In this document: one piece after another, positions 17,105 through 61,600 of the stretch
How the letters are laid out: each line of letters opens with the position of its first letter
How positions within the stretch are numbered: the stretch's first letter is position 1
Origin: Hydrolagus colliei
Lineage: Eukaryota
DNA length: 64,000 nt
Direction of reading: 5' to 3'
Assembly: GCA_035084275.1 (NCBI GenBank)
Contig: CM068756.1
Location: forward strand, 14,880,001 to 14,944,000
The notes under the pieces: generated by a model
Databases searched by the model: none
Told to the model about the DNA's origin: nothing
What the model saw: only the letters and a program-made list of their open reading frames with translations
Translations under genes and position numbers: made by a program

Positions 17105-17219
17105 CTTTCAAGCTGTGAGATTTTAACATGGTCAACAATGAAGATGGTCAACACGATCACTACCAAGAAACAGAATATAAACCGTAAAATCGTCAGGTTC
17201 TCCGACATTCCACAACAAT
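17105..17219 (-). CDS. R2 exon 4: stalk plus TM with Arg (activating type)
   Basis: gttttctag|AT..GAA AG|GTATGG; DCCGMSENLTILRFIFCFLVVIVLTIFIVDHVKISQLE; phase 1 fits the C1 donor. Missed by the ORF track. Confidence 0.85.
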
Positions 17220-18058: not shown

Positions 18059-18379
18059 CATCCAATCCTGTGTGTGGATTAGAAACGGTGTAACTGGCAA
18101 CCACTGGATTCGGGTGGCAGACATGAGATGCCAGACAGGTATAAACAACCTCGATCTCTGAAGGCTGGGTCTCTTCCACAGAGCTGGAGACTTCGTAAAG
18201 TCCATTTGAATTCTTTTCTTTCGTGACATTGATCCCAGTTCTAACTTCATTCCCATTTTCAAACCACGTGAGCGTTATATCCCCCGGGAAAAACGCAGCC
18301 GTTTTACACACAAGAGTCTGAGGCTTTGATGAATCACTTTCAGAATCTCTGGGGATTATCTTGAGCGGGGTCGGGGACA
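18059..18379 (-). CDS. R2 exon 3: Ig C1-set domain
   Basis: ctgccctacag|TG...GAT G|GTAGGA, 321 nt, phase 1-1; LVCKTAAFFPGDITLTWFENGNE...YTCLASH. Confidence 0.95.
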
Positions 18380-18963
18380 CTGTAGGGCAGAGAATGGAGC
18401 AGAATCGTGTCACTTGTGATCAGTTGGAATATAAACATTATTCTAATTTGAATTGTATAATAACTATTTCCTTGGAGGGTTTAGAAAGTTAAGGTACATA
18501 ATTTTAACATTGCGATTTTCAGAAATGGCGTGGAAATCTTCCCATCACATGGAATAATTTCGTTGTGAAATCCAGTCCACAGTGGCTTCAGATGCAGAAT
18601 TAAGTGGAATATTTAACAGGGAGGCAGACCATAGCTGTAAAGAGTTTGGAGAGAGGTGAAGAAATTGGAGTAAAAGCTCTGCCACCTTTCTGCAACAGAA
18701 AAACCTTTAGTTTGGGAGCATAACGTTCCGAATTCATTTCCGAAATCCATCTTCCTCCCCTTTCCGTCTCTACAGTCAATCCCAGCTGAACACACACCTC
18801 TCTGAGTGTCTTTTCGGCCACTCTCCCATCCCAGGTGGATTATAGCTCTGCCTGCCATGCATTCTTTGCCATGCGCTTCAAGCTGCTCTCCCAACAGTGA
18901 GTTATATTAATGTAAATTCAAGTGAATCTACAGTGAAGATCTCAGCCAAATCATGCCACTTAC

Positions 18964-19269
18964 CACAAACAGTTAATTTCGAACCAGTTCCATTAACCGC
19001 TCTATTATCCGGAATGACCAGGCTACAGTAATAGATCCCAGAGACCTGGATGTCTGCAGCCAGGAGATGGAAGAAGGCGCTTCTTGAACCATTGAAACCA
19101 AATTCTTTCGTTTGATCCTCTCTGAGGAATCCATTCGCTCCCAGCTTCCACCAGTGAACTCTCACACTCCTGGTGACAGGGAAGCCACAGGAGAACGTCG
19201 CCTTCTCACCTCTGTTGACAATGATATGATCCGGTTGTTGTGTCACTGTGAAGACTGTACAGTCAGCAG
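18964..19269 (-). CDS. R2 exon 2: V-set domain with germline J-like end
   Basis: tttctgacag|CT...TGT G|GTAAGT, 306 nt; ATFSC, HWW, SGIYYC, NGTGSKLTV. Confidence 0.95.
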
Positions 19270-19427: not shown

Positions 19428-19485
19428 CTTTAGAAATGATCCACACTGTGAGAGACAGACACTGAAACACAACACTCGCCAACAT
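19428..19485 (-). CDS. R2 exon 1: signal peptide
   Basis: MLASVVFQCLSLTVWIISK then G|GTTTGT; 58 nt, phase 1. Confidence 0.9.
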
Positions 19486-27465: not shown

Positions 27466-27469
27466 GAAT

Positions 27470-28294: not shown

Positions 28295-28461
28295 TTACTT
28301 GGATTTTGGTTCCCTGGAGATAGCTCCTGCTCCATGGTTTCTCACATGGACCTCTGCGTACTCTGTATTCTTAGCAGTACTTTTAGGTTTCCTGTTTTTT
28401 TGGAGGGATGTAAATCCAGAACACTATATGTCAGATTGTTCCCAGCTGCTCTTTGATTAGT
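28295..28461 (-). pseudogene. R3 terminal cytoplasmic exon (LTYSVL and TEYAEV) with a 1-nt frameshift
   Basis: atcttttcag|ACT: TNQRAAGNNLTYSVLDLHPSKKTG, frameshift, KPKSTAKNTEYAEVHVRNHGAGAISREPKSK*; homolog of 51240 and 63953. Confidence 0.8.
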
Positions 28462-29217
28462 CTGAAAAGATAAAGTTTGACAAGTTAATTTCATCAATTT
28501 GTGTTTATTTAGTTTTCAAAAATCTACTCTAATATTTGCCAATTATTATTTACAGCATGGTTTACCCCATAGTTCCTTTGATAAAGGCACTGCTCCTCAC
28601 TGAACTAATCAGAATCTAGCCAGTATAATCCTGTATACACGCTGGCTGGCCACCACGCACATGCACATTTGTGACACAGTGGCACAGTCCTGACTAAATC
28701 CAATGTTTCCTCGGCTGGCTGGCCCCACCCGCAATGCACCCTTGGGAAAGTCCAATGACTCTTCGGCCTCCTAGCATTCTGATGGCATTGCTTGGTAAAC
28801 AGAAGAGAGAGAGAGTCTCACTTCCAGGACCAAAGGTAAAATAATTTAGCCAAGCTGTGGTTTTATTGCTTTGTTGCTTTATTTTTTATCGCTTTATTGC
28901 TGTTTATTTATTGCTCTCTCTGTCTCTTCTGGAAGAGTCATCAGACTTTCCCAATAGGGCATTGCACACGGTGGGGCGGTGGGGGGGGAGTGGGGAGCGA
29001 GAAACGGGCCAACCAATTGTAGCCCGCCTCAGTACATACCTACATACCTTGCATTGGTCGGGTGTGGATGCGCCTGGAGGCTTGAGGTGGGTAAACTGTG
29101 GCTTGATTCCCCTATCCCCACTTTTCCCATTACTTGTTAACCTTAACCAATGTGATTTTACTGATTGTGCAGTTTTCCAGGAACGTAATCCCCGCAATCG
29201 ATGAGGGTTAATTGTAC

Positions 29218-29328
29218 CTCAGCATACACAACGTTCTCATCTTGTTTTGGGGGTTTTGGAGTTTTTTTGCAACGATTCAAATCTATTTTGGCGTAAGTCA
29301 CCATCTCATTCCCTGCTCCCTGCAGTGT
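29218..29328 (-). pseudogene. R3 cytoplasmic two-Tyr module
   Basis: ttttacag|TLQGAGNEMVTYAKIDLNRCKKTPKPPKQDENVVYAE|GTACAA, 111 nt, phase 0-0. Confidence 0.85.
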
Positions 29329-29778
29329 CTGTAAAACAGAAAATATAGAGTGTTGTCATCACTGATCTGGAGATCCCTGAATAAGTCTTCACCAAATGGC
29401 CTCAAGAATAAATATTTGCACCTAAGTTTAACATATTCAACAAATTCAACATTCATATTCTTTTAGCAGGGAGAATCATCCAGTTTAGCAGCTGTTCAGT
29501 GATCTACAGAAATCTGGGGTGCGCATTTCCATATATTGGTGATGTCCCAGTGCCTCATAGATGGACACGTAGAATAAATAATCTTAAACAAAAAAAAGTA
29601 TGTAAGTATGCAGTGGCAGATTGCCAGCATCATATGGTATAACAGCCCAGGACACTGCAAGAGAGTGAAGAATAGAGGACAAAGAAAGATTAACCACAAA
29701 ATGTACAAACTAGTTTAATGTAAACATTGAAGTGAGGTCCTCTATATATAATGTAGCAGATAGCATTCTGATATATAC

Positions 29779-29889
29779 CTGGGCATACACAACATTCTCG
29801 TCTTATTTTTTCGGTCTTGGAGTTTTTTTGCAACGATTGAAATCCATTTTGGCGTAAGTCACCGACTCAGTCCCTGCTCCCTGCAGCGT
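29779..29889 (-). pseudogene. R3 cytoplasmic two-Tyr module with in-frame TAA
   Basis: TLQGAGTESVTYAKMDFNRCKKTPRPKK*DENVVYAQ|GTATAT; CAA to TAA relative to the 29218 copy. Confidence 0.85.
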
Positions 29890-30361
29890 CTGTAACAGAA
29901 TGTGATTCAGTGTTGCCATCACTGGTCTGGAGATTCCTGGATAAATATTGATGAAGATTCCCTCCAACATCAATATTTTCACCTAAGCTTAAAATATTCA
30001 ACATTTAGCTTCCGGATATTTTAGTAGTAAGAATCATCCAGTGAAGCAGATGTTCGATGATCTACAGAAATATGGGCTGTGCATTTCCATATATGAGTGA
30101 TGTCTCAGTGCCTCATAGATTGACAGACACAATAACCAGTCTGATACAAAAAAAACGAGTTGACCATACAGTGGCAGATTGTCAGCAGCATACAATAGAA
30201 TAGGATGGGGACAGAGAGTGAAGATTAGAGGACGAAGAAAGATTAACCACAAAAATATACAAACCATCTTACAGTAAATACTGAATTCAGTTCTACTCTT
30301 TACTGAAGCCAAGATAATTAAATTCGATGAATTGTTTTGATTTTGTGTTTCTCAGATATAC

Positions 30362-30472
30362 CTGGGCATACACAGTCCTTTCTTCTTGCCTTTTAGGTTT
30401 TGAACTTTTCTTGGAACTGGTCAAATTTAACGTGACATAAGCCACCAGTTCATTCTCTGCTCTGTGCTTTGC
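30362..30472 (-). pseudogene. R3 cytoplasmic two-Tyr module (ITIM VAYVTL)
   Basis: tttcctag|AKHRAENELVAYVTLNLTSSKKSSKPKRQEERTVYAQ|GTATAT, 111 nt. Confidence 0.85.
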
Positions 30473-30889
30473 CTAGGAAACAGAATGTAATCATAACAAT
30501 AAAAATACATTACATTTCTTTAGCATCTTTCAGGTCTGCATGATGTCCGAAGTCACTGATAGATTATTGTCTCTGCCATCTAAATTGTTGCATAAGTACT
30601 AATCAGTAAGCCCTTGAGAATAAATAATTGCACCAATGTTTATCATTTTTAATATATAGTTTGCAAATATTTTACAAGCAGAGTTACAGTATTATTAAAT
30701 ACTCTATCACCAAATGCCATGAAACTGGGTACCTAATTTTCATTAATACATCGAGTCAACGTGGATGCGCATATGGAATGTATTTAACGTGGTTTTATTT
30801 CTTAATTGTGAACAATATCTTTCCAGAATTCAATATCTGAATTCTATTTTCAGTTGAATTATCTGCTGGAATGAATTTTTTAAATGTAC

Positions 30890-30933
30890 CTGTTCTTCGC
30901 AGTGACCCAACATGTTCTGGTTTCTGCACGAGC
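30890..30933 (-). pseudogene. R3 44-nt phase-1 to phase-0 linker exon
   Basis: ccttctaag|GSCRNQNMLGHCEEQ|GTACAT; same length and alignable to R5 48518-48561. Confidence 0.75.
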
Positions 30934-31689
30934 CTTAGAAGGAAATTTTAAAAATTAAATATTCACTCAATTTTACATAAATATTTTCAACTATAATTTG
31001 GTTAAACTGAATAAAAAGTGACTCAAAGACCACAAACTGCCTGAGCCTGGTTTTTAAAATGTAGCTGTCCTCTATCTCAAAACTGATAGTTTGAATCTAC
31101 ATGCAAAATTTCAACATTTTAACACAACTACCTCTATCTTGCCAAACTTCTCTTATTCCTTCTCGTACTGATGCCCACTGTTCTCTGGAACACCATCTCT
31201 GAGTGTGTCAGATTACCTCTTTCTCAAGCATGCTTCAAATTGTTGATGATTTGATGAACTGAGATAATTTGTGGTATTGAATATAAAACCAAAGGGGGTG
31301 GTAATGTTAAGATGAAAAATCGTTAAATAGAATAGACAGGAATACCCTATTGAGTGTGATCATTGAGGCAAAATGTACATTCACTTTCACAATAGTACTC
31401 GAAGAAATAACCTAAAACTTTTCAAATGTAAAGGTATTAGGGCCAAACTGGTAAATTGGGACTGAAAACTTTGCTCAAAAAAGCAGTACAGATATAATGA
31501 GTTTCTTGTGTGCTGTAAATTTGTGTGGTTCTATCGAGCGTTTTGTATTTAGATTCAAAGGTGTTTCCTGTCCCCACACCCAATTACACCAAAAGATTAA
31601 TTAGCATTCCATTCATGAATTCCCATTCATTTTGGGTTTTCCACAAGGTATGAATAGCACTTTACATGTTTCTCTAATTCCCTTACTCT

Positions 31690-32035
31690 TTGTTTCCCTT
31701 TAAAACAATATCCATGGTTATAGCATCTTTCTCATCTTCTAATTGCTTCACAGAGTATATTGCAAAGTGAATTGCCTGTATATTTGTGGGTGAAAAGAGG
31801 TAGCCAATTGTGCACAGCAATGTCCCACAAACCAACTTTTTATTTGTTTTTGTTTGAAGGATTATTATCCCAGAAAAATGATCCGTCATTCAACTGATAA
31901 CCAGGTTTCTATCTACCGCTGGGTGAACAGACACGGGTGGAGTAAGGAAAATTCCTCTACGCTTTGCCCTGCTGGGTACAGAACTCGGGTCTCTCATTTT
32001 CTAAGCGAGCGCTCTAACAACTGCGCAACAGGCAA
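31690..32035 (-). mobile_element. tRNA-derived SINE
   Basis: ggagtaaggaaa, agccaattgtgcacagc core. Confidence 0.75.
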
Positions 32036-32564
32036 CAGGACTGCACAGATTCAGCACTAATGGTGACCACTAGTGTGAACCTGATCTCAGGTTAGCGAGG
32101 AGACAATTGATGACAAGAGATTGGTACCAGCTGGCATTGCTGTCTCCCGCCCGCCTCACTTTCTCTCAATCCATGCCTGGCTATCACAAATAGAATGTGA
32201 TCATCTTTATCACAGGTGAATGGGATGTGAATTATTTCAAGAGCGAACACTATGGGCTGAATGACCTTCTATGCTGTAAATTTCTGCAGTTCAATCACAA
32301 CAGATTTCCGACACTCCTGGCATGGAAATTTCTGATTCAACATGCAGCTAGATACATACAGGATGAGTTTTGTGAGGGCATTTGCATTTTTGAATTAATC
32401 ACAAAATATAAATCATTTGTAAAACTTGAACGAATAATAATAATCATTTGATATAGCGCCACATGTCAATTTCTCTCCCATTGTCACCTCTCATCCATGA
32501 AATGAATTATTCTATTAAATCAAACATTTACAAATAACTTAAATAAAATAGGAACATATCTTAC

Positions 32565-32666
32565 CTTTCCCTTTTTTAAATTGGCATTGTTTCCCAATAA
32601 TGATCAAAAGTAGCAGGAATATCAACCCTCCAACTGCACATCCAGCGATCAGTTGAGGGCCAATCA
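32565..32666 (-). pseudogene. R3 TM exon, uncharged (inhibitory type)
   Basis: gttcttgtag|VIGPQLIAGCAVGGLIFLLLLIIIGKQCQFKKGK G|GTAAGA, 102 nt, phase 1-1. Confidence 0.9.
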
Positions 32667-33459
32667 CTACAAGAACAGCATAAACTGAATGTGTTAGTAA
32701 ATCCAGCAATGAGGTACACTTGCATTATCATATGAGAAACTTTCAAGCTGATTTTTTGTTGAAAAAAATATTTTATAATTCTCCCGGCAGGTTTGTTCCA
32801 GTCAAACACACATTTGATCAAAAGCCATCCAGCCCAGCTCATCTGCGACTGATAGCAAGACTGAGGAACAAAGGCTAATCTGTGCCATATATTGCTACTA
32901 ACTGGAGAGTACCAAATGATGAAAATTTAACACCCAATTTGAAGGGAAGTATTTATCTTTTATAACAACAAAATAGGATATACATTAAAAGATGTACATT
33001 TCATGCCTCAGTTCTGATTGAGCAGAGGTCTCAGAATGTAATATTGTTAAGGACAATTTAATAGAGTAAGAGATGAAGGAGTAAATTCATAGAATGACAT
33101 AAAGTTACTGGAATCTTATGGCACAATTCGGCTATTTGAGTCTGCAAGCACTTTAAAAAGTGCAATTCAATCCCGCTACCCAGCTCTCTCCCCATAACCG
33201 CGAAAACCCATCCTCTCCAGATTAATGTCTACCTCTCTTGTAAAGTTCAATGTCATTGTATCAATATTTCAATGAAGTATTCTGCTTAATATAACTTTAA
33301 TTTTCTGTATCTATAAATGTGTATATATTTTGGGTTACAATTTAGGTAATACCAATTGTGTTTCGGAAATTACCAGCGGATAAACGAATTCAAATACAAT
33401 TTCCAATAACGAGATGTTTAAAAAACAACGAAAGACAAAAAGATAAGTAGGCATCATGC

Positions 33460-33663
33460 CATCTAAAATACTACAGATGTTGGAAACCTGAAAACAAAAA
33501 CAGAAATCGCTGGGAACACTCAGCGGGTCAGCCAGCATCTATAGAGAAAGGAAAAGCGATTCAACGTTTCAGATCTGAGTTCTGACAAAGGGTCCTGAAC
33601 GAGAAACGGTGACTCACATTTCCTTCCTGCAACAATGCGGCCTGACCTGCTGAGTGCTCCCAG
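33460..33663 (-). mobile_element. Palindromic element inserted at the R3 C1 splice donor
   Basis: 23-bp inverted arms at 33509-33531 and 33642-33664 with 2 mismatches; possible GATG duplication. Confidence 0.75.
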
Positions 33664-33984
33664 CATCCAATCCTGTGTTGGGTTCAGAAACGGTGCAACT
33701 GGCAACCTCTGGATTCGTAAGGCTGACATGAGATGCCAGACAGTTATAAACAACCCCACTCTCTAAAGGCTGAGTCTCTTCCATAGAGCTGGAAACGTTG
33801 TGAAGCCCATTTGAATTATTGTTTTTCCGGAAATTAATCCCAGTTTTAATTTCATTCCCATTTTTAAACCACGTGGGCGTTATATCCCCCGGGAAAAACG
33901 CAACAGTTTCACACACAAGAGTCAGAGAATTTGATGAATCTCTTTCAGGATTTCTGGTGAATATCTTCAGCGGAGTCGGGGGCA
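33664..33984 (-). pseudogene. R3 C1-set exon; donor destroyed, no upstream V or leader
   Basis: ctgtcctccag|TG; LVCETVAFFPGDITPTWFKNGNE...YNCLASH; 321 nt like R2. Confidence 0.9.
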
Positions 33985-35507: not shown

Positions 35508-35565
35508 ATGTTGGCGAGTGTTGTGTTTCAGTGTCTGTCTCTCACAGTGTGGATCATTTCTAAAG
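35508..35565 (+). CDS. R4 exon 1: signal peptide
   Basis: MLASVVFQCLSLTVWIISK G|GTTGGT. Confidence 0.9.
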
Positions 35566-35664
35566 GTTGGTGACTATTCACTATCCCAGTGATCTCAAAC
35601 ACAAAGTGTGTGTCTCTGTCACAGTATTTTGTTTCAAAACAATGTTTGACTTTATTTCTGACAG

Positions 35665-35943
35665 TTGCTGACGGTACATTGATCACAGTAACACAACAAC
35701 CCGAACAGATCACTGTCAACAGAGGTGAAGATGTGACGTTAACCTGCACCATCTCTAGCACAGCGAACGTGAAAATGCACTGGTGGAAACAGGGAGAGAA
35801 AACATTTGATGTCGAATTTTCTGGAAGGGCCGTCTTCAAACTCCACGATGCAGGTCTCCAGGACTCTGGGATCTATTACTGTTCAGTGGCATTTAACGGA
35901 AGTAAAACAGTGAATGGAACTGGATGCCGTTTAACTGTATGTG
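35665..35943 (+). CDS. R4 exon 2: VJ-type V domain with a 9-aa in-frame deletion
   Basis: 279 nt; VTLTC, HWW, DSGIYYC, NGTGCRLTVC. Confidence 0.95.
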
Positions 35944-36336
35944 GTAAGTGACATGCCAAGGCAGAGATAGTAACTTTATATTTAGTGGAACCATAATTTA
36001 CATTTATGTGAGGCTTCTCGCTGTTGGGGAGGTTCTGAAAGGCTTTACAAAGGCTGAGGAGCAACCAGAGCTGACACTGAGCTGGGAGGGGAGAGTTGAG
36101 GAACGTCTTCAGGTGGGATTTCAGAGGAGAGAGGGGAGGGAGAGAAGGATGGATTTTGATAAAGAATTCTGGAAGTTTGGGGCTGTGTGGTTCAACTTTG
36201 CCCTGTACATGAACATTTCCAAAAGTTGGGGTGACACAAAATAATGGCCGCAATATTCAAATTAAGGTGCAACTAGAAATGTATATTAATTAACCATTAA
36301 TTCTATGGTTTTCTATTCTATTCTACTGTTTTCCGC

Positions 36337-36575
36337 GGAGTCTTGTAGAGCCGTGGTTAGAGCACTCACCTTACAAGCGTGAGACCGGTATTCGAATCCA
36401 GCCAGGTCAGGGCGAAACCTTCGGCAAGTTTCCTGACTCCACACGGCTAATATTGAACAACAACAAAGTCGTCCGCAAATATACAGTTAATTTACTTTAC
36501 AGCATATTCTGTGAGGCGCTTTGAGATATCTAGAAGTTATGAAAAGCGCTATATCATGGATTAACATTATTATTG
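36337..36575 (+). mobile_element. tRNA-derived SINE (duplicated at 44821-45100 plus 47006-47035)
   Basis: gtggttagagcactcaccttacaagcg...attcgaatcc; family tail. Confidence 0.85.
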
Positions 36576-36866
36576 TTAGTTAAACTCTACATTTTATGTT
36601 TCCTGTAAACTTGGAAATTCTGCCTCTTATATCAGAAATAAGATTACATTTCTTTGTCAATTTATTATGGGTTAGTGGGAGTCGCCTTGAACAATTACAC
36701 TGATAACTAGCCAGCTCCTCGTTCACTTTATAGCTGTAGAGACATTTCTTTGTGCAAAATTGCCTGCCGTGTATACCCACAGATAAAGGCAATAAACTTC
36801 ATAGTATATCCTGCCAAGAGATTTCAGATTTGATCAGACTTGATATCAAAGATTTTTCTATTCCAG

Positions 36867-37178
36867 TGCCCCCAATTCCTCTGAATATTTCGTCCAAATC
36901 TCCTCCAAGAGATTCATCTGTGTTTCTGACCCTCGTGTGTGAAACGGCAGCGTTTTACCCGGAGAATCTCACCTTCACATGGTCTAAAAACGGCACCGAA
37001 ATTACAACCGGGATAATCAGCACTGAATGGCAGAACCCGGAGGGATTGTATGAAGCTTCCAGCTCAGTGGAGGAGACACAGCCTGTCCAGAATGGGACAG
37101 TTTATACCTGTCAGGTGTCTCACATCAGCCTCCAGACTCCAGCAATTGGCAACTACACGGTTCAGTTTCTTCCTCAAG
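36867..37178 (+). CDS. R4 exon 3: C1-set domain
   Basis: ctattccag|TG...CAA G|GTAGGT, 312 nt; LVCETAAFYPENLTFTWSKNG...YTCQVSH. Confidence 0.95.
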
Positions 37179-38876
37179 GTAGGTATACAACAGTTTCAGT
37201 GTTAGTTAGTGTTAGCCGCCTTTCACAGGAACATTTCCTTTTTTTTAATTCACACTGAGAACTATACTCATATAATTTGCTTCATGTAAAATCTAAATCA
37301 CATTCATCTTTAGTGGAGTAAACTTGAATTGTTTTTACTCCAAGATTATATCACTTGCTCTTGAAAATATCAACAGTTCAGATTTCAAACGTGTAATATC
37401 CAATATATTGTACACTGCAGAGCGAGTATGAAATGTAAATTTACATCCCATTTCTCAATGACGAGTTGTTATTCTGTCCCCTCTATTTCACCTCATGATC
37501 TGTGTTGAATGGCGCTATAATATTAAATTATTTTCACAAAATCATTGGTTCGGAGTCTCTTTACAATGATGATTGTGTGAGGACCTCAGCTCCATGATTC
37601 CTGTGGAGCCGCGGCTGAGACTGGAAGGTAACACCGCCGATGGTGATTTCCAGATGATTTCACCTTTCCATGGCTCAGCACATTGGCACATTTTGACCCG
37701 AATTCACAATCTAGCTGCACTTGGGAACTGTTAATAAATGTTTTCTCTCTACAGCTGTCTTTCTCAGAAATAACCACGATAACTACCGCCGATTTTGTTG
37801 CTGGTAATAAATATATTCACACTCAACATATTGCGTTAAAAAACACATCTCTATCCAGTTTCCGACAAAGCACTTTGAAACGCTTGCATTGTATAATGCG
37901 CCATATCTAATTCAAGGTTTACTATTTATTTTATTACTATTGCCGAGAAGTTTCATTGCGTCTCTACAACATAATGTACTTGCTCTCTCATTTCGCTTAC
38001 TATCAAATAAAATTATGCGAATACCTTATTGTGAATGGTATATACATATATACATATATTCATCAACATAATCCATCAGGACGCAGGAAACAAGTTACAT
38101 GAAACATCCCAGGGTCTATTTTTATTTATTGTTCTTATGTAGAAAAACACGCCAACGTCATTGTTCCTCAAACACTTGTTTCGGGATAATTGTGTGGTTA
38201 TTGAAACTTTAAGCCATTCGATCACAATAAGCAGTTTCACCTCTGAATTCCCGGTTTCCAAGCCAACAATCCCCAGTGATGATTTTGTTAGAAACTCAGT
38301 TCTATGATTGCTCAGAAGCCGCAGCTGAGACTGGAAGATAACACTGCGGGTGATGGTTCCCAGAATACCATGTTTCGCCTTATGATGGAGCATTTTGTCC
38401 CAGTGCTTACAGTTTGGCTGCAGTCGGGCGCTGGATGGCTACAAGCTGTTGTTATTGTTGTAACTTTTGTTGCCCCCCTACCCTCTCTCCCCCTCCTTTC
38501 TGTCCTCGCACTCTTTCCCACTTTCTCTCCCCTCTTTTCCTCCCATCTTTGCCTCTCTACCCCCTGTTTACTTCCCTCTTTCTTTCCACACCTTTGACTT
38601 CCTTCACCCATACCCCCCTTCCCCCCCTTTTCCTCCCTTACCTTACCCCACACCACGATTGTTTGTGGGACTCCGTTGTGCCGAATTTGATGCCGTGTTT
38701 CGCCCACAAATGTACAATCAATTCTCCTACTGTCTATCCATCATTATCCATGTGCAAATGCTGTTGTGCATTAAATGCTAACTGGTCTCGCTTCCCCAGT
38801 CTAGTTTATTTCGTGACAACATTTCAGTTAAACACAAGCAGCGAACAGCACTGATGATTCTATCTTTGCTCCCTAG

Positions 38877-38988
38877 TGTTTAAAGGACTCGGTTTCATCG
38901 AAATGTGTCGGTTAGGATTCAGCGGGTTGATAATATTACTCCTGGCCGTCATCATTGTGGACTATTTCGATATTAATCCTCTGTAAAG
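38877..38988 (+). CDS. R4 exon 4: TM with Arg (activating type), stop at 38984-38986
   Basis: tctttgctccctag|VFKGLGFIEMCRLGFSGLIILLLAVIIVDYFDINPL* then AG|GTAAGA. Absent from the ORF track. Confidence 0.85.
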
Positions 38989-43965: not shown

Positions 43966-44023
43966 ATGTTGGCGAGTGTTGTGTTTCAGTGTCTGTCTCT
44001 CACAGTGTGGATCATTTCTAAAG
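43966..44023 (+). CDS. R5 exon 1: signal peptide
   Basis: Identical 58-nt leader, G|GTTTGT. Confidence 0.9.
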
Positions 44024-44122
44024 GTTTGTGACTATTCACTATCCCAGTGATCTCAAACACAAAGTGTGTGTCTCTGTCACAGTATTTTGTTTCAAAACAA
44101 TGTTTGACTTTATTTCTGACAG

Positions 44123-44428
44123 TTGCTGACGGTACATTGATCACAGTAACACAACAACCCGAACAGATCACTGTCAACAGAGGTGAAGATGTGACGTTAA
44201 CCTGCAACATCTCTAGCACAGCGAACGTGAAAATACACTGGTGGAAACAGGGAGAAAGTCAATACATGGTAATGGATCACAAGAAAACATTTGATGTCGA
44301 ATTTTCTGGAAGGGCCGTCTTCAAACTCCACGATGCAGGTCTCCAGGACTCTGGGATCTATTACTCTTCAGTGGCATTTAACGGAAATAAAACAGTGAAT
44401 GGAACTGGATCCCGTGTAACTGTATGTG
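44123..44428 (+). CDS. R5 exon 2: VJ-type V domain lacking the second canonical Cys (YYS)
   Basis: 306 nt; TAT TAC TCT where R4 has TAT TAC TGT; NGTGSRVTVC. Confidence 0.95.
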
Positions 44429-45100
44429 GTAAGTGACATGCCAAGGCAGAGATAGTAACTTTATATTTAGTGGAACCATAATTTACATTTATATGAGGCT
44501 TCTCACTGTTAGGGAGGATCTTAAAGGCTTTACAAAGGCTGAGGAGCAGCCAGAGCTGACACTGAGCTCGAAGGGGAGAGTTGAGGAACGTCTTCAGGTG
44601 GGATTTCAGGGGAGAGAGGGGAGCGAGAGAAGGATGGATTTTGATAAAGAATTCTGGAAGTTTGGGGCAACGTGGTTCAACTTTGCCCTGTACATGAACA
44701 TTCCCAAAAGTTGGGGTGACACAAAATAATGGCCGCAATATTCAAATTAAGGTGCAACTAGAAATGTATATTAATTAACCATTAATTCTATGGTTTTCTA
44801 TTCTATTCTACTGTTTTCCGCGGAGTCTTGTAGCGCCGTGGTTAGAGCACTCACCTTACAAGCGTGAGACCGGTATTCGAATCCAGCCAGGTCAGGGCGA
44901 AACCTTCGGCAACTTTCCTGACTCCACACGGCTAATATTGAACAACAACAAAGTCGGTCAATTCAATCCATGACAGTTTGTGGGACACTGACTGCTGTGT
45001 GCAATTGGCTGCTGCGTTTTGTCGCCAATATACAGTTAATTTACTTTACAGCATATTCTGTGAGGCGCTTTGAGATATGTAGAAGATATGAAAAGCGCTA

Positions 45101-47005
45101 GATTCATAGATTCATAGATTCATAGAATTTTACGGCACAAAAGGAGGCCATTCGGCCCATCTAGTCTGTGCCGGCTCTTTGAAAAGAGCGATTCAATCCC
45201 ACTGCCCTGCCCGCTCCCCATAGCCTAATAGACCTGTTCTCCCTAAATAAAGATCTAATTCCCTTTTAAAAGTTGTTATCGAATCAGCCTCCACCACCTT
45301 TTCAGGCAATGCATTCCAGATTCGAACAACTCGCTGAGTGAACAAATTTCTCCTCAGCTCCCCTCTACTGCGCCTTGAAACTATTTTAAATCTGTGACCA
45401 CGAGTCACAGATTCACCCACGAGTGGAAATAGTTTTTCTCTATTTACCCTGTCGAAACCCCTCATGATCTTATAAACCTCTATTAGGTCTCCCCTCAATC
45501 TTCTCTGCTCCAGAGAGAATAACCCTAGCCTATCTAGCCTCTCCTCATAGCTGAAGTCCCTCAATCCTGGCACCATCCTAGTAAATCTTCGTTGTACCCT
45601 TTCCAATGCCTTCACATCCTTTCTGTAGTGTGGTGACCAGAATTGAACACAGTATTCCAGCTGAGGCCTCACCAAAGTCCTATAGAGGTTAGTCAGCACT
45701 TCCTGACTTTTGTACTCTATACCCCTATTTACAAAGCCTAGTATCCCATATGCCTTCTTAACAGCCTTGTCTACCTGTCCTGCCACCTTCAACGAGTCAC
45801 TAACACAAATCCCCAGGTCTCTCTGTTCCTTTACACCATTTAAAATTGTACTATCTAGCCTATATTGCCTCCCTTCATTCCTTCTCCCAAAATGCATCAC
45901 CTCACACTTCTCTGCATTAAACTTCATCTGCCATGTGTCTGCCCACTTTACCAATTTGTCTATATCCTCTTGCAGATGGCTACTATCCTCCTCACTGTTT
46001 ACTATTCTCCCTAACTTAGTGTCATCTGCAAACTTGGAAACTGTACTCCGTACACCCAAGTCCAGATCAATGATGTAGATTACAAACAGCAATGGTCCCA
46101 AAACTGATCCCTGTGGCACACCACTGCTCACTTCCCTCCAATCTGAAAAACAGCCGCTCACTACAACTCTCTGCTTTCTGTCTCGCAGCCAGTTGTGGAT
46201 CCACGCTGCCACTGTCCCTTTTACGCCATGGGCCTTTAATTTCATAATAAGTCTCTCATGTGGCACTTTGTCAAATGCCTTTTGAAAGTCCATGTAAACT
46301 ACATCAACTGCGCTACCATTATCCACCCATTCCGTTACCTCATCAAAAAATTCTATCAGATTTGTAAGGCAAGATTTGCCTTTAACAAATCCATGTTGAC
46401 TGTCCTTTATTAGCCTATATCTTTCTAAGTGAAGATCTACCTTGTCCCTGATTATGGACTCTAGAAGTGTGCCCACTACCGACGTTAGACTGACTGGTCT
46501 GTAGTTACCAGGCTTGTCCTTCTGCCCCTTTTTATACAAGGGAGTAACATTAGCTATCCTCCAGTCCTCTGGCATGACCCCTGTGTCCAAGGAAGATTGA
46601 AAGATCGTGGCCAGAGTCCCTGCTATTTGCTCCCGTGCCTCACTTAGTAACCTAGGGTGCATCCCATCCGGACCAGGTGACTTATCCACCTTGAGCGACG
46701 TCAACCTTTTTAGAACTTCCTCTCTGGTTATAATTATTCTATCCATTTCTCCTACCCTCTCCTCTAATACCATGGCATTGGCTGTATCATTTTCTTTTGT
46801 GAAGACAGAGGCGAAGTACTCATTCAGTACATCAGCCATGCCCTCTGCCTCCACAATGAGATATATAAACTGCACCTACTTCCCCCTCTGCACCTAATTC
46901 CCACTCTCACCCAATTCCTTCTCACTCTGTCCTTGCCTCACTCCATCCGTAGCTCACTCTGGCTCTCTGCTCGATTAAGGCTCTCGCAGCTAGATATTAA
47001 TCCAA
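45101..47005 (-). mobile_element. Young CR1 insertion with an uninterrupted 560-codon RT/C-terminal ORF plus a 143-bp unrelated 5' segment
   Basis: ORF 45193-46875 with FADD; (ttctatga/atctatga)n tail; empty site gcgcta|tatcatgg at 36545-36558 in R4. Confidence 0.95.
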
Positions 47006-47321
47006 TATCATGGATTAACATTATTATTGTTAGTTAAACTCTACATTTTATGTTTCCTGTAAACTTGGGAATTCTGCCTCTTATATCAGAAATAAGATTA
47101 CATTTCTTTGTCAAGTTATTATGGGTTAGTGGGAGTCGCCTTGAACAATTACACTGATAACTAGCCAGCTCCCCCTTCACTTTATAGCTGTAGAGACATT
47201 TATTTGCGCAAAATTGCTTGCAGTGTAATACCCACCGATACAGGCAATAAACTTCATAGTATATCCTGCCAGGAGATTTCAGACTTGATCAGACTTGATA
47301 TCAAGGATTTTTCTATTCCAG

Positions 47322-47633
47322 TGCCCCCAATTCCTCTTAATATTTCGTCCAAATCTCCTCCAAGAGATTCATCTGTGTTTCTGACCCTCGTGTGTGAAAC
47401 GGCCGCGTTTTACCCGGAGAATCTCACCTTCACATGGTCTAAAGACAGCACCGAAATTACAACCGGGATAATCAGCACTGAATGGCAGAACCCGGAGGGA
47501 CTGTATGAAGCTTCCAGCTCAGTGGAGGAGACACAGCCTGTCCGGAATGGGACAGTTTATACCTGTCAGGTGTCTCACCTCAGCCTCCAGACTCCAGCAA
47601 TTGGCAACTACACGGTTCAGCTTCCTCCTCAAG
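47322..47633 (+). CDS. R5 exon 3: C1-set domain
   Basis: 312 nt, 6 aa different from the R4 C1; same splice sites. Confidence 0.95.
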
Positions 47634-48259
47634 GTAGGTATACAACAGTTTCAGTGTTAGTTAGTGTTAGCCGCCTTTCACAGGAACATTTCCTTTTTTA
47701 AATTCACACTGCGAACTATACTCATATAATTTGCTTCATGTAAAAAATAAATCGCTTTCACCTTTAATGATGAACATTTTAATTGTTGTGAATGCAAAAT
47801 AATATCACGTACCCTTGAAATGTTAGCACTGCATGTTTCAAACGTTTGACATCCAAAATGTTGTTTCCAGCAATGCAAGTATTAAATGTTTACTGTAAAA
47901 TGCTGTGAATGCGTATTTTGGGGGAAAACGGCGGCCATTGTCTACACAGCTAATTAATGCTCGAGCATCACAGAGAAAGCCAACAGTTTGATTTGGGGGA
48001 TTGTTGACCTGGAAACCGGGGATTCAGACATGAAACTGCACACTGTATTGTGATCCAATGGATTAAAGTTTCAATAACCACACAATTCTCCAGAAGCAAG
48101 TGTTTTAGGTCAAACCACGTTGCCGCCTTTTTCTATATAAGAACGATAAATAAAAATATATCCTGGGCTGTTTCATGTGACATATACTTTGTACTTTGAG
48201 ACGCCTTGACGACATGATATAATGTTGTATCAAACACGTAATTATGATCTTATCTATAG

Positions 48260-48364
48260 TGAAAAAGCATCACTTATTACTGATCGTTGGATCTGCAGCT
48301 GGCCTGGCTTTTCTGGTGCTGTTGGTGTACATTGGCTTACGATCTAAGGGAAAGAAAACGAAAG
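48260..48364 (+). CDS. R5 exon 4: uncharged TM (inhibitory type)
   Basis: tatctatag|VKKHHLLLIVGSAAGLAFLVLLVYIGLRSKGKKTK G|GTAAGA. Confidence 0.9.
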
Positions 48365-48517
48365 GTAAGAATTTAATTTTTTTCACGGTTAATTATGAAA
48401 GCTTGATTTTGCTACATGTTAACGTGCAAACGCTGGGCGTCCGATCGCTTTCATTCTTTTTTGTTCTCCATTCAAGATTCGGTAAAAATGTCAGTTATTA
48501 TATTTCATTCATTTTAG

Positions 48518-48561
48518 GTTTACACAAGAAACAGAATGATTCGGACCACCGTAGCGAACAG
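48518..48561 (+). CDS. R5 exon 5: 44-nt linker
   Basis: attttag|GLHKKQNDSDHRSEQ|GTAATA, phase 1 to 0. Confidence 0.8.
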
Positions 48562-48793
48562 GTAATATACATACCAGGGGGGATTTCCCTTCTGAAGGAC
48601 CATTGAAAACATTGAAAAGGACTGTGTTGTTTATAAATATTTAAGAATGATTTTCAATTCATTTCTTACCTGTTTGCCTGCTTCACCAATACAAAGCACC
48701 AAAGCAATGCAAGTAACATAGTGTACCAGCCATGTTGTCTTGATAACCCATACATTAGGGTAACAGTTCAAAGTTGCAGTTCGTGATTTACAG

Positions 48794-48904
48794 GCAATGC
48801 AAGGAGGAGGTGATGAGATTGTGACATACATCACACTGGATTTGAAAAGTTTCAGTAAATTGTCAACACCTAAACATCGTGAAGATAGCACAGTTTACGC
48901 CAAG
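48794..48904 (+). CDS. R5 exon 6: ITIM VTYITL plus TVYAK(I)
   Basis: tttacag|AMQGGGDEIVTYITLDLKSFSKLSTPKHREDSTVYAK|GTAAAT, 111 nt. Confidence 0.85.
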
Positions 48905-48964
48905 GTAAATCTGAAAAAAACATAACATTAACATATACAATCATATAATTCAAACTGAAGATTT

Positions 48965-49260
48965 GCAAGAATAGTATGAGGAAGCTGGACAAGTCTGTTT
49001 ACATTGGAGCAAAGTTGATTGAGAGGGGATTTGACAAAGGTGTACAAAATTAGGAATGATTTGACAGTGTATAAAGAAAGAAGCTATTCCCAATGATAAG
49101 GGAGTCAGCAGATAGAGGACGTATAAGATAGTGTAAAGAATAGTGAAAGGAAAGTTTAGCAGATATTTTTCACACATGTAGTTGTTTTGATAAACTGGTA
49201 GAGGCAGAGTCTATTGTGAGTTGAAAGAGAAAAATCGAAAGGGGCATTAAATATATGCTT
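48965..49260 (+). mobile_element. Degraded CR1 3' fragment
   Basis: ttgagaggggatttgac...gtgtacaaaatt; gaggac...atagtg resemble CR1 RGDL..VYKI. Confidence 0.55.
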
Positions 49261-49968
49261 TATTGGGCCTCTCGACTAACTACACAGGTCCTCGACAAGT
49301 TATCCCAAATATAGTTTAATTATGTGTGAGCCAAGACAATGAGTGATTGCAGCAAATTAGGCTACTCGATAGATATCACAAATGAATGGATGCTGTCACA
49401 CACACCTCTTTCCAACATACATTTCAATCAATCAAAACTTACATTTATATAGTGCCTTTCACATCGAGAGGACGTCCGAAGGTGCTGTGCAGTCAGGGTA
49501 GAGACAAGAGCAGGAGGGGGATTGGGGTAAGATGAAGCAGCATAGGAAAATTGACTGTATATTTGTGGGCAAAATGCGGCAGCGAAATTGCACACAACAC
49601 AAACAGTCATGGGAGTGGAATTAGGGGAGAAAGGGGGGAAAGATGGCAGGGGTCAGGTAAGGGGAAGGAGAGCAGGAAACCTAACTGTATATTTGTGGGT
49701 GAACAAAACAAAAGTTTTGGCAAACTTACTGAGAGTACCCGTTTCCCTTCCAAGACAAGGGATGTTGAGGTCATTTCCCACCGTCCAGACAACTCAGAGA
49801 GGGAGTTGTGTTCCCCTTGGTTTCTACAGATTGGTTTGAGCAGTTGGTTTTACAATTGAGCAAAACGACAAATCATGGTGGCAAATCAATGTGTTTACTT
49901 GTTTTACTGTATTGAAATTTTCAACTAAAGACTAAATTAATTAAATTCCAATTCCTCGGCTTTCATAG

Positions 49969-50085
49969 ATCAAGAAAAAGGCGGAAGGTCACAATGAGGT
50001 GTGTGCTGCTTCCGAGTTTTCTGACCCGAACAATGTAGTAAAACCTAAGAGAACTGACCCAAATACAGTATATGCTACAGTGCAG
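49969..50085 (+). CDS. R5 exon 7: first Tyr lost (Y to C), ITSM TVYATV
   Basis: tttcatag|IKKKAEGHNEVCAASEFSDPNNVVKPKRTDPNTVYATVQ|GTGAGA, 117 nt. Confidence 0.85.
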
Positions 50086-50420
50086 GTGAGAAACCATGAA
50101 CGACATTGGAGGGCATTTGTAGGGAAAGAAAATCAATTATACCTTGCATTGTTAGCTGCGCCAGCTGATCATTAGAGCATATCAATGTGTAAATTAATCA
50201 CCCCACATACAAATATATTAATGGATGTCGAGTTAAATTACTGTTCAATTGTGGATTGAATCAGGTACACCTATAATGATGATGGCAAGGAACAGTTGGC
50301 TTTATCAGCTGAGATATGGGAATAACCAAGGTGGAGATTCATATTGGTAATTCCTACGATATCTTTTTGCATAGAGAGTCAATCAACTAAATTAGCAATC
50401 CTTGTATTTTACTGAGCAAG

Positions 50421-50531
50421 CAAGGGGCGGCTGGTACCATGCCAACATATGCTGCTCTTGATTTTTATGACTCCAAGAAAATGCATAATCATACCCGCAG
50501 TGATGTAAATATGGTGTATGCCGAGATACAG
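50421..50531 (+). CDS. R5 exon 8: PTYAAL plus MVYAEI; acceptor altered, start uncertain
   Basis: QGAAGTMPTYAALDFYDSKKMHNHTRSDVNMVYAEIQ|GTGAGA; the in-frame acceptor would be aag at 50418-50420. Confidence 0.7.
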
Positions 50532-51239
50532 GTGAGAAGGAAGAGCAGAGTAATCTACAGAAACTAAGACCTAATGTCACAATCCTCAGTATATCAGTTA
50601 TATTCTCTGTAATGGTGAGTCAGTTCAGTTATGCCAATGTTGTGCTGTTGGTGCATTGCTATGATTCAAAGACCAGACAGTAGTTTAAGAATCAGAGAAT
50701 CGTGCCAGAGAGCAATAGATCATTCTTCCCAATCCAATTTGCACTAATTTTCTTTCCACACCAATTAACCCAATCTGAAACTTACATTCATTCAGCTTTT
50801 CCCACTTTTCCTTCCCATTCCTTTGCTTAGAGAATTCGGCCTTCTTCCCCACACTTTGCATGAAGAATTCATGATTATCTTAAATTTGTGCCCTCTAGTA
50901 ACTGAACCAGCTGCGTTTTCTTCCAGCCATCCCAGCAAATCTAAATCTCCTGTTCACTCCCTAACCCCATGTTGGAGTCCTGTGCCCCGGGACATGATTG
51001 TGCACAAATGGCCGTTACCTTTTGCCCAAAATATACAATCAATTCACTTTACAGTATATTCTGTGAGGCACTTTGAGATGTCTTGAGGATGTGAAAAGCG
51101 CTATATCAAATGCAAGGATTGTTATTGGTATTTACTATGCATTGACCTAGAGATATACCTGGGAAACTTATCAGTTTTTTTTTTATCAAGTTTGGATAAA
51201 GGAATAAGCTGACAATACTACTGAATATTGACTTTACAG

Positions 51240-51439
51240 GCCAAGCAAGCGGCAGCTGCTAACAAGCATACGCTGCTTTAGAATTTTATACCTCCAAGGA
51301 AACAAGCAAACCTAAACAGAGCAACAAGAATACAGAGTATGCCAAGTTCCAGGTGAGAAAACAAAAAGGAGCAATAGAGGCAAACTCAACAGATCATGAC
51401 TTACGTAATCTTGCAATGATAAGTGCAGAAGATGATTAA
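51240..51439 (+). CDS. R5 terminal exon with a 4-nt deletion (stop at 51279-51281; ancestral frame to 51439)
   Basis: actttacag|AKQAAAANK; TGAC missing relative to R6 63953. Repaired frame: LTYAALEFYTSKETSKPKQSNKNTEYAKFQVRK...EDD*. AATAAA at 51691 and 51802. Confidence 0.75.
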
Positions 51440-58500: not shown

Positions 58501-58558
58501 ATGTTGGCGAGTGTTGTGTTTCAGTGTCTGTCTCTCACAGTGTGGATCATTTCTAAAG
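58501..58558 (+). CDS. R6 exon 1: signal peptide
   Basis: Identical 58-nt leader. Confidence 0.9.
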
Positions 58559-58657
58559 GTTTGTGACTATTCACTATCCCAGTGATCTCAAACAGAAAGT
58601 GTGTGTCTCTGTCACAGTATTTTGTTTCAAAACAATGTTTGACTTTATTTCTGACAG

Positions 58658-58963
58658 TTGCTGACAGTACATTGATCACAGGAACACAACAACCCGAACA
58701 GATCACTGTCAACAGAGGTGAAGATGTGACATTCACCTGCACCATATCTCATATACCAAGCATGAACATACACTGGTGGAAACAGGGAAAGTGTGAAAAT
58801 GTACTACTGGATGACAATAAAACATTTCATGTCGAAACTTCTGGAAATGTCTCCCTCAAGCTCCTGGATGCAGCTCACAAGGACTCTGGGATGTATTACT
58901 GTACCATGGTGTTGCAGGGAAGTACAACAGTAAAGGGAACTGGATCATATTTAACGGCTTGTG
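58658..58963 (+). CDS. R6 exon 2: VJ-type V domain
   Basis: 306 nt; VTFTC, HWWKQGKC, DSGMYYC, KGTGSYLTAC. Confidence 0.95.
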
Positions 58964-59783
58964 GTAAGTGTCAATACAAATCAGAGATCGTAATTATTAT
59001 ATTTATTCAAATCATAATTTCCATTCGTATAAGGCCTCTCACTGTTGGGAGAGAATCTTAAAAGCGTAGTACAAACTCTGTGGGGCAGCTGGAGCTGAGA
59101 CCTGAGACCAAGATGGGAGGTTAGAGTGACCGAAAGGACATTCAAACAGAAAGTCTTCAGTCGGGATTGGATAGAGGGAAGGGCGAGAAGGATGGAATTC
59201 GATAAGGAATTCTGGAACTTCGGGAAATCATTGCTGAACACTCCCTGCACATGAAAATTCCCTAAAGCTGGGATGACACAAAGCACTGGGCACAATATCC
59301 AAATTAAGGTTTTCTAATGATTTGTCTAATAATTAGTTCTGTGGTTTTATATTCTGTACTTTTAATAAAACCCTGGATTCCACTTGATTTTTCGCCAGTT
59401 TTGTTCACCTGAACATCCCACATTTTCGTATTGATCTGCATTAACCCCAAGACCCTTTTTTCTTCCACTGTTTTAATGATTATCCTTCGGGGTGGGCGGG
59501 GGAGTGGGGGAGTGACTGGGGTCCCCATGGAGCTGAACTGGCTCCAAAGTGACGCGCCTGGCAACCGAATATCGGAATCGAGCCAACAGGTTATTGGGAA
59601 TTGACTTGAACAATTAAACTTACAGGTGGTGACATCATCATTCCCGTTAAATTTCAGAGAGACAATTCTGTGCACAAAATAGCCCACCATGTACGACCAC
59701 AAATACAGACATTATTCTTTATAGTATATCCTGGGAGGGTATTTATTCGTGATAAGACGTTATATCAAAGATTTTTATTGCAG

Positions 59784-60095
59784 AGCCCGCAATTCCTCTG
59801 AATGTTTCATCCCCATCTCCTCAAAGAGATTCATCTGTGTGTCTGACCCTCGTGTGTGAAACAGCAGAGAGTTTCCCGGAGAATCTCGCCTTCACATGGT
59901 CTAAAGACGGCACCGAAATTACAGCTGGAATAATCACCAATAAACGGCAGAACCTGGAGGGACTGTATGAAGCTTCCAGCTCTGTGGAGGAGACACAGCC
60001 TGTCCAGAATGGGACAGTTTATTCCTGTCGGGCGTCTTATCTCAGTTTCAGGACTCCAGCAATTCGCAACAACACGGTTCAGCGTCCTCCTCAAG
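59784..60095 (+). CDS. R6 exon 3: C1-set domain
   Basis: ttattgcag|AG CCC...CAA G|GTAGGA, 312 nt; SVCLTLVCETAESFPENLAFTWSK...YSCRASY. Confidence 0.9.
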
Positions 60096-61070: not shown

Positions 61071-61414
61071 GATTATAATAATAATAATAATAATCCTTGC
61101 ATTTGATATAGCGCTTTTCACATCTTATCAACGTCCCAAAGCGCTTCACAGAATATACTGTAAAGTGAATTGACTGTATATTTGTGGGCGAATCGCGGCA
61201 GCCAATTGCGCACAGCAGTGTACCCCACACAGTCGTGGATTGAAATGACCAATTTTATTATTGTGGTTTTTTTTGGAGGGATTATTATTGGGTGTGTGGA
61301 GTAAGGAAACTTGCCCAAGGTTTCGCCCTCGCCTGGATTCGAACACAGGTCTCCCCAGCTTGGTCTCCCCAGCTTGCAAGACAAGTGCTCTAACCACTGA
61401 GCCACAGGAGCTCC
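61071..61414 (-). mobile_element. tRNA-derived SINE, full length
   Basis: ggagctcctgtggctcagtggttagagc, gttcgaatcc, core, (att)n tail. Confidence 0.9.
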
Positions 61415-61600
61415 ACAATTGTAGGGCAACGCTATGCAGAAATTGACTGCACCAAAAATACACCAAAAATACACATTCGCAACAGATTACAGTACATGTG
61501 AATCATGTGGTGGGATTTGGGACACCTTGATGATACGATACGGTATGACATTATGTCAAATGCACAAATTATTATATCATAATTATGATCTTATCTATAG

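Follow-up and report, generated by a model that had tools for sequence, protein, structure and literature searches.

Exon layout of gene A

We analysed a stretch of 64,000 nucleotides from the chimaera Hydrolagus colliei (contig CM068756.1, positions 14,880,001 to 14,944,000 of the forward strand; hereafter the window), which is gap-free vertebrate DNA and carries a receptor gene, here called gene A, built of domains like those of immunoglobulins (Ig) and T-cell receptors (TCR). Gene A lies on the minus strand at 19485-17105 and comprises a split leader, an exon for a variable domain with a joining-like end (VJ exon), one exon for a constant domain of the C1 set and an exon for the stalk and transmembrane segment (TM):

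19428..19485, minus strand: leader exon of 58 nt, MLASVVFQCLSLTVWIISK, with a phase-1 donor (G/gtttgt)
18964..19269, minus strand: VJ exon, acceptor ...gacag/, donor G/gtaagt, phase 1 at both ends
18059..18379, minus strand: C1-set exon, acceptor ...ctacag/, donor G/gtagga, phase 1; FFPGDITLTWFENG...VVYTCLASH
17105..17219, minus strand: stalk/TM exon, DCCGMSENLTILRFIFCFLVVIVLTIFIVDHVKISQLE, with an Arg in the TM and no immunoreceptor tyrosine-based inhibitory motif (ITIM); donor AG/gtatgg, phase 2

The leader is nearly identical to that of Callorhinchus XP_007902822, and an intron of 158 nt separates it from the VJ exon. The VJ frame is unbroken from strand A to the J-like end (AADCTVFTVTQQPDHIIVNRGEKATFSC...VHWWK...SGIYYC-SLVIPDNRAVN-GTGSKLTVC), with the 11 residues SLVIPDNRAVN between YYC and GTG and then a J-like GxGxxLTV motif (GTGSKLTV). 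The C exon translates as VSPTPLKIIPRDSESDSSKPQTLVCKTAAFFPGDITLTWFENGNEV...VVYTCLASHVCHP.... The first-pass annotation of this DNA, which was made from the letters alone, had proposed at 18059-19269 an unbroken VJ exon with an 11-residue loop and a J-like GTGxxLTV, spliced in phase 1 to a C1 exon and followed by a TM. The exon structure of gene A agrees in each of these points; its V exon starts and its C exon ends exactly on the limits given, though the TM is found outside them, at 17219-17105.

This TM exon was recognised after the census of the family described below had exposed a second, Arg-containing TM type. It resembles the TMs of this type in shark members of the family (...IVRLL.AFLVILALT.IIVDHVKISSIEG), and its TM and juxtamembrane parts match the shark members P0193, P0046 and P0021 (IVDHVKISSIEG), the counterpart in P0193 reading ...MIVRLLMAFLVILALTAIIVDHVKISSIEG. 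TM and tail exons of the ITIM type, used as tblastn and blastn queries, gave no match downstream of gene A or of a second copy, gene B. Gene A is an intact non-rearranging VJ-C1 receptor gene, with its exon joins predicted from the DNA. The stalk has two adjacent Cys residues (DCCG) right outside the TM (17190-17219, minus strand), and the V exon of the holocephalan copies ends in Cys (LTVC). Either the stalk Cys or the LTVC Cys could form inter-chain disulfides, which hints at dimers.

The lack of recombination signal sequences (RSS), also claimed in the first-pass annotation, holds at the scale of the window. A scan of the 64 kb for heptamer and nonamer pairs spaced by 12 or 23 bp returned one site (28675), far from any V exon, where about 0.66 are expected by chance, and V through J is a single open exon, with no separate segments, in four of the four window genes. 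Framework 1 of gene A (FTVTQQP; 19236-19253, minus strand) contains a perfect heptamer CACAGTG followed directly by the A/C-rich ACACAACAACC; the same position of the V exon reads CACAGTA in copies B and C and CACAGGA in copy D. This heptamer is not an RSS, because the 12- or 23-bp spacer is missing, and it is probably a coincidence.

Domain types and predicted structure

Both sequence and predicted fold indicate that the C domain of gene A is of the C1 set. It scores 52 bits against Pfam C1-set (PF07654; cut-off 21, E=9e-14), with C2-set_2 at E=0.16. When the C domain was modelled by itself (predicted local distance difference test, pLDDT, 80.6), the top 50 Foldseek matches in the PDB were all C1 domains, namely MHC (major histocompatibility complex) class II beta2, lambda5 and Ig CL, with template modelling scores of 0.67-0.76 and root-mean-square deviations of 2.2-3.3 Å. 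The first-pass annotation had called this single domain C1-set, with C2/I-set as the competing assignment, and both Pfam and the fold place it in C1.

The V domain of gene A passes the Pfam I-set (27.9 vs cut-off 23.7) and stays below the V-set threshold (21.7 vs 26); among 44 family members scanned, V-set and C1-set were each found in all 44. In the AlphaFold2 (AF2) model of V and C together (pLDDT 89.6), the V domain has strands A, A', B, C, D, E, F and G and a long FG hairpin, whereas C'' is absent and C' vestigial at best. The distance from WW to YYC is 38 residues, compared with 50-57 in NKp30 and in the first domain of SIRP (SIRP d1), and neither WYxQ nor WYQQKPG is present. By its J motif and FG loop the V domain is VJ-type, though shorter than the V domains of Ig and TCR.

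The best PDB fold matches of the V and C model are Ig light chains (E ~1e-15). This raises the question whether gene A is a germline-joined Ig light-chain gene, as the Ig-lambda genes of cartilaginous fishes are entirely germline-joined (PMC12227049). A VJ exon followed by one C1 exon would fit, the best PDB matches in sequence as well as fold are Ig lambda and kappa chains, and some relatives of gene A carry the automatic name Ig lambda-like. On the other hand, identity to light chains is 20-26%, the V domain is short with neither C'' nor WYQQKPG, and a C-terminal Cys for joining a heavy chain is missing. The explanation is effectively refuted by the TM and tail exons, as gene A has a family-specific TM exon and its paralogues have ITIM tails.

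A multigene family of cartilaginous fishes

A search with a single sequence retrieved 10 relatives, with identities of 36-50%, from sharks, rays and Callorhinchus only. With a profile, about 52 named family proteins were found at 178 bits or more, the score then dropping to 61 bits for an Ig mu chain, which is not a member. An exhaustive search of representatives gave 303 proteins at E<=1e-30, family members being mixed with giant multi-Ig proteins among the 150 matches listed. The window genes cluster with Callorhinchus sequences in the trees, and no database protein is 70% or more identical to them. All 20 family representatives that were sampled came from sharks, rays or chimaeras.

The automatic names of these proteins conflict with each other: SIRP-alpha-like, SIRP-beta-like, NCR3 ligand 1-like (NCR3LG1-like), tapasin-related-like and Ig lambda-like, and further TCR beta-like, MHC class II-like, PD-L1-like and CD276 homolog. 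No curated family covers the family proteins that were looked up. No account of the family was found in the literature searched; publications on shark NCR3 and on antigen-receptor-like genes that do not rearrange lay outside this search and might mention it.

In a census set of 82 family proteins, a TM was present in 64, and ITIM-like motifs or motifs like the immunoreceptor tyrosine-based switch motif (ITSM) in 34, while other members had an Arg in the TM. This second TM type has the Arg near its outer end and IIVDH at its inner end, and several members of this type are short-tailed (R...IIVDH). The tails of the shark relatives contain two to five ITIM/ITSM-like motifs. Every gene in the window has one C1 exon between V and TM, and two members with two C1 domains (P0073 and P0011) contain near-identical, recent internal duplicates.

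We consider it likely that gene A belongs to a fast-evolving, SIRP-like paired receptor family with one C1 domain, which forms a multigene family of cartilaginous fishes. As judged from their sequences, the putative inhibitory members have ITIM/ITSM-like tails, and the putative activating members combine a short tail with an Arg that lies in the outer third of the TM. Genes A and B look activating, because they have a TM Arg and no ITIM, and two more copies (genes C and D) and a 3' fragment look inhibitory because of their ITIM tails. The two kinds of signalling part thus stand side by side in the window.

Other copies in the window

The first-pass annotation had spoken of "each V exon" and so of more than one gene. 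Using the gene A product as a tblastn query, we found three further complete leader-VJ-C1 sets, namely B (35508-37178), C (43966-47633) and D (58501-60095), all of them on the plus strand, and the 3' fragment:

35508..38986, plus strand: gene B, with leader 35508-35565, VJ 35665-35943, C1 36867-37178 and Arg-TM exon 38877-38986
43966..51360, plus strand: gene C, with leader 43966-44023, VJ 44123-44428, C1 47322-47633 and TM 48260-48364
~48794-48900 (VTYITL), ~50412-50549 (PTYAAL, MVYAEI) and ~51233-51360 (in-frame stop), plus strand: ITIM tail exons of gene C
58501..63119, plus strand: gene D, complete, with leader 58501-58558, VJ 58658-58963, C1 59784-60095 and TM 61601-61714
62982-63119, plus strand: last coding exon of gene D, LTYAAL...VVYAEIQMRKNSR and then a stop
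28335..33984, minus strand: 3' fragment, with C1 33984-33664, TM 32666-32565 and four repeated ITIM tail exons at 30485-28335 (VTYAKI, VVYAEV)

The leader peptide of 19 residues is identical in all four genes, each of which has a short split-leader intron. The Arg-TM exon of gene B runs to a stop codon (...CRLGFSGLIILLLAVIIVDYFDINPL). The ITIM-like tail motifs of the window are VTYITL, PTYAAL, MVYAEI, LTYAAL, VVYAEI, VTYAKI and VVYAEV. Tail exons with an ITIM are tandemly duplicated inside each inhibitory gene (48794-51360, 62982-64000 and 28335-30485), some copies having in-frame stops.

The 3' fragment has neither leader nor V; no V-like sequence was found from 33985 to the leader of gene B. 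The canonical donor after its C exon is lost (GAT G/ct), and one copy of its tail exons contains a stop. It stands head-to-head with gene B at a distance of about 1.5 kb.

Genes B and C are recent duplicates with 93-94% identity in V and C, each with a different lesion in V. Since B has the Arg-TM and C the ITIM type, a putative activating gene and a putative inhibitory gene here have almost identical ectodomains.

In comparisons of gene A with B, C and D, the ratio of nonsynonymous to synonymous substitution rates (dN/dS) was 0.75-1.0 for the V exon and 0.39-0.47 for the C exon. The synonymous rate (dS) was 0.39-0.51 for the V exon, about half of that for the C exon (0.88-0.94). The higher dN/dS of the V exon agrees with relaxed or diversifying selection on a ligand-binding domain, and family-wide variability is highest in the BC, C'-D and FG loops. 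The identical leaders, together with a V dS of about half the C dS, suggest that the leader-V module was subject to gene conversion or exchange among the copies more recently than the C exon.

Neighbouring genes

The window holds only family copies and retroelements, and the neighbours of the family were read from two sharks. In Heterodontus francisci, a family gene adjoins NUDT21 (a neighbour with a NUDIX_2 domain and a 37-residue peptide), and in Scyliorhinus canicula, a family gene adjoins OGFOD1 (2OG-FeII_Oxy_4 and Ofd1_CTDD). In human, NUDT21 and OGFOD1 are adjacent on 16q13, and the SIRPs are on 20p13. A tblastx comparison of the shark NUDT21 and OGFOD1 flanks with the window showed only shared reverse-transcriptase copies of long interspersed nuclear elements (LINEs). 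The NCR3 genes of the white shark map to the MHC class III region on NC_054485.1, with AIF1 and PRRC2A as neighbours (supplement of PMC10751288). Family members sit on contigs of other sizes than that of white shark NCR3.

Because its neighbours are NUDT21 and OGFOD1 in these two sharks, the family is not at the positions of SIRP, NCR3/MHC or Ig/TCR, as far as could be seen from two shark loci and with the SIRP position judged from the human location. Synteny, which the first-pass annotation had put forward as a check, thus places the family in sharks but gives no link to the MHC, the NCR3 cluster or the Ig/TCR loci.

Reverse-transcriptase open reading frames (ORFs) or fragments of LINE type are at 5054-6700 (plus), 20329-21261 (plus), 45211-46857 (minus), 54267-54880 and 56970-57806, and several of these pieces share 50-67% of their translated residues with a retroelement copy at the Heterodontus locus. 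Base composition is odd at 20001-24000 and 26001-28000: 20-22 kb has a GC content of 0.525 and a GC skew of -0.38, and 26-28 kb has a GC skew of +0.42 and an AT skew of +0.27. ORFs near 28000 are of low complexity, either leucine-rich or proline/serine-rich. The stretches of odd composition are probably repeats.

Relationships to SIRP, NKp30 and antigen receptors

The V and C profiles of the family were scored per domain against a local set of single-domain references, in which SIRP-alpha was taken from the database, NKp30 was checked against the PDB, Ig lambda and kappa were partly checked and the remaining human sequences were entered by hand. Per-domain scoring replaced a ranking of whole PDB chains by profile score, which was uninformative because multi-domain chains (titin, contactin, Ig heavy chains) pile up score. 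The results were as follows:

C profile: Ig lambda C, 51.0 bits; mouse kappa C, 50.9; SIRP-alpha d3, 43-50; DR-beta b2, 47
C profile: TCR C-beta, 32 bits; SIRP-alpha d2, 25-31; tapasin, 12
V profile: SIRP-alpha d1, 30-37 bits; NKp30, 33.5; TCR V-alpha, 31.6; Ig V-kappa, 29.6

The C1, C2 and C3 domains of nurse shark UrIg2 scored 31, 29 and 37 bits with the C profile. A relationship to tapasin, in spite of the automatic names, was rejected, the Ig-C domain of human tapasin (sequence entered by hand) reaching 11.9 bits.

The C tree unites the family in one clade (91/82), which stands beside SIRP d2 (84/84, on a long branch) within an unresolved group of SIRP d3 and the C domains of Ig and TCR. 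The V tree again gives one clade (87/97), within a group whose branching is unresolved and which also contains SIRP d1, Ig V and TCR V; NKp30, MOG, PD-1, CTLA4 and CD28 stand apart from it, with NKp30 joining MOG. The first-pass annotation had envisaged firm nesting in SIRP as the alternative outcome of separate V and C1 phylogenies; in both trees, in which the SIRPs are mammalian, the family forms its own clade and does not appear inside SIRP. Profile scores and trees thus give the family a place that is probably outside SIRP, but for both domains SIRP is the closest reference or shares that rank.

This nearness gives some room to the explanation that the family members are true SIRP orthologues or co-orthologues with one C1, in which either a domain was lost or the second C1 was gained later in SIRP. 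Many members are named SIRP-alpha-like or SIRP-beta-like by the NCBI pipeline, SIRP-alpha d1 is the top V reference and d3 is joint best for C, and the C tree sets the family beside SIRP d2 as described. Like SIRP, the family has a non-rearranging N-terminal VJ-type domain in one exon, C1-set sequence, and clustered paralogues in which ITIM-tailed inhibitory forms are paired with short-tailed forms having a basic TM residue, as in SIRP-alpha and SIRP-beta. Some tails also have four tyrosines that alternate like those of SIRP-alpha (VAYVSLDL..TVYAQT..IIYSVLDL..VEYSQIQV in P0041, compared with ITYADLNL..TEYASIQ..LTYADLDM..SEYASVQV). This last likeness is weak evidence because the pattern is common among ITIM receptors, pairs of ITIMs at such spacing being found in many unrelated receptors. 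Moreover, the family has one C1 and not the two divergent domains d2 and d3, its two-C1 members being products of recent duplication; its V is about 15 residues shorter than SIRP d1 and is without C''; its TM residue is Arg, not Lys; its neighbours NUDT21 and OGFOD1 differ from the human SIRP location; and no branch of the V tree unites it with SIRP d1. Orthology to SIRP is therefore rather unlikely in our view.

NKp30 (NCR3) offers another non-rearranging VJ domain. PMC12227049, which cites MT914154-61, presents shark NCR3 as a diverse multigene family. If our genes were this shark family, the multiple copies and a TM Arg would be expected, as the TM of activating NKp30 carries an Arg in its outer part, like that of gene A. 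The score of human NKp30 with the V profile falls inside the range of SIRP d1 and is not distinctive. On the other hand, white shark NCR3 is beside AIF1/PRRC2A in the MHC and the family beside NUDT21/OGFOD1, mammalian NKp30 has no C1 domain, and the V tree, in which mammalian NKp30 stood in for shark NCR3, places NKp30 away from the family. We therefore regard identity with shark NCR3 as highly improbable.

Discussion

The data presented above favour the reading that gene A is one of many paired receptors of cartilaginous fishes. By comparison with SIRP-alpha/beta, NKp30 and the novel immune-type receptors (NITRs) of teleosts, such receptors are likely to act as follows. The variable loops of the VJ domain, which correspond to complementarity-determining regions, would bind a ligand on the cell surface or on a pathogen. 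The ITIM forms would recruit phosphatases of the SHP type, and the Arg-TM forms would pair through their TM charge with an adaptor of the DAP12, FcR-gamma or CD3-zeta kind that contains an immunoreceptor tyrosine-based activation motif (ITAM). Expression, ligand binding, adaptor pairing and the direction of signalling are thus inferred, while the exon structure, the domain types, the two TM/tail classes, the distribution of the family and its neighbours are observed.

Several points weigh against the paired-receptor reading. The exon 3' of the gene A TM exon was not found, shark terminal peptides (KGRLTISVSAAHNS...) giving chance matches only. Gene A could be unexpressed, and its neighbours B and C are damaged: the VJ exon of gene B has an in-frame 27-bp deletion (9 residues) in the C'-D region, and that of gene C reads YYS instead of YYC, so that the second Cys of V is gone. 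Adaptor pairing and ITIM function are argued by analogy. The tree references are mammalian, leaving aside the V domains of shark Ig, TCR, UrIg and NCR3 as well as non-mammalian SIRPs; in both trees the deep branches are unresolved, and SIRP d2 stands on a long branch. In addition, the limitation to cartilaginous fishes is as sampled in the 20 representatives and not from an exhaustive list.

Comparable systems of paired receptors are known from bony fishes. The teleost NITRs, compared here by description, have a non-rearranging V with J-like motifs and form large, fast-evolving clusters with paired ITIM and charged-TM members. Their second domain, when present, is I-type and not C1, and to our knowledge they occur only in bony fishes. 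Also comparable are UrIg and UrIg2 of elasmobranchs, which share with the family a non-rearranging VJ exon, a split leader, C1-type domains and the occurrence in cartilaginous fishes, and which have been discussed as relatives of the antigen-receptor precursor (PMC12227049). UrIg is secreted and contains three C domains, and UrIg2 contains at least nine; each is a single gene in linkage with the MHC or the Ig/TCR complex, and elasmobranchs are the only group from which they are reported (PMC12227049). The family, in contrast, has one C1, many copies and ITIM or Arg-TM parts, and includes chimaeras.

The first-pass annotation had gone further and inferred that the arrangement matches the proposed ancestral receptor from before the RAG recombinase. 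The layout does match, but nothing beyond the layout ties gene A to an ancestor of the antigen receptors. Layout alone is insufficient for such a claim, as the genes belong to a large, fast-evolving family with ITIM and Arg-TM members, which is the signature of paired innate receptors. Nor is the architecture new in kind, since non-rearranging VJ-C1 genes are known in SIRP and in UrIg and UrIg2 (PMC12227049; PMC10751288).

Two forms of the ancestral idea can be distinguished. In one of them, gene A is a surviving relic of the pre-RAG precursor and stands nearer to Ig and TCR than other non-rearranging VJ genes do. Its leader-VJ-C1-TM layout with a split leader and phase-1 splices is that of TCR and Ig light-chain genes, Ig-lambda C is the single best C reference (51 bits), the V tree groups the family with SIRP d1, Ig V and TCR V and away from NKp30, MOG, PD-1, CTLA4 and CD28, and a two-domain VJ+C1 precursor is postulated in current models (PMC12227049). 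On the other hand, no branch unites the family specifically with Ig and TCR, and its neighbours gave no sign of linkage to the MHC or the Ig/TCR loci. Unlike TCR and Ig light chains, the family has no RSS or separate V and J segments, its V is without C'' and the WYxQ motif, and its multiple, fast-evolving copies with ITIM tails or a lone TM Arg have the parts typical of innate paired receptors. Moreover, UrIg2, which is a published candidate, scores 29-37 bits with the C profile, below Ig-lambda and SIRP d3. We find the relic explanation quite improbable. In the other form, the family as a whole is a direct descendant of a pre-RAG VJ+C1 membrane receptor, whose minimal layout was kept in cartilaginous fishes and co-opted for a paired innate receptor, SIRPs and possibly Ig/TCR being its elaborated relatives. 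This form is allowed by the unresolved V and C trees and by a V domain that goes with the V domains of SIRP, Ig and TCR and away from NKp30, CD28 and PD-1; we hold it to be improbable as well, if slightly less so.

For models of the origin of Ig and TCR, the family adds a minimal, membrane-bound form with one C1 to the short list of non-rearranging VJ-C1 genes. It does not make the origin question directly testable; its linkage and its place in the trees bring it no closer to Ig/TCR than SIRP, UrIg and UrIg2 are. Finally, proteins to which automatic pipelines have given names of at least seven kinds are indicated by our evidence to be one coherent VJ-C1 family of sharks, rays and chimaeras with activating and inhibitory forms. 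SIRP-style paired receptors made from domains of the antigen-receptor type would thus be present across the living cartilaginous fishes.

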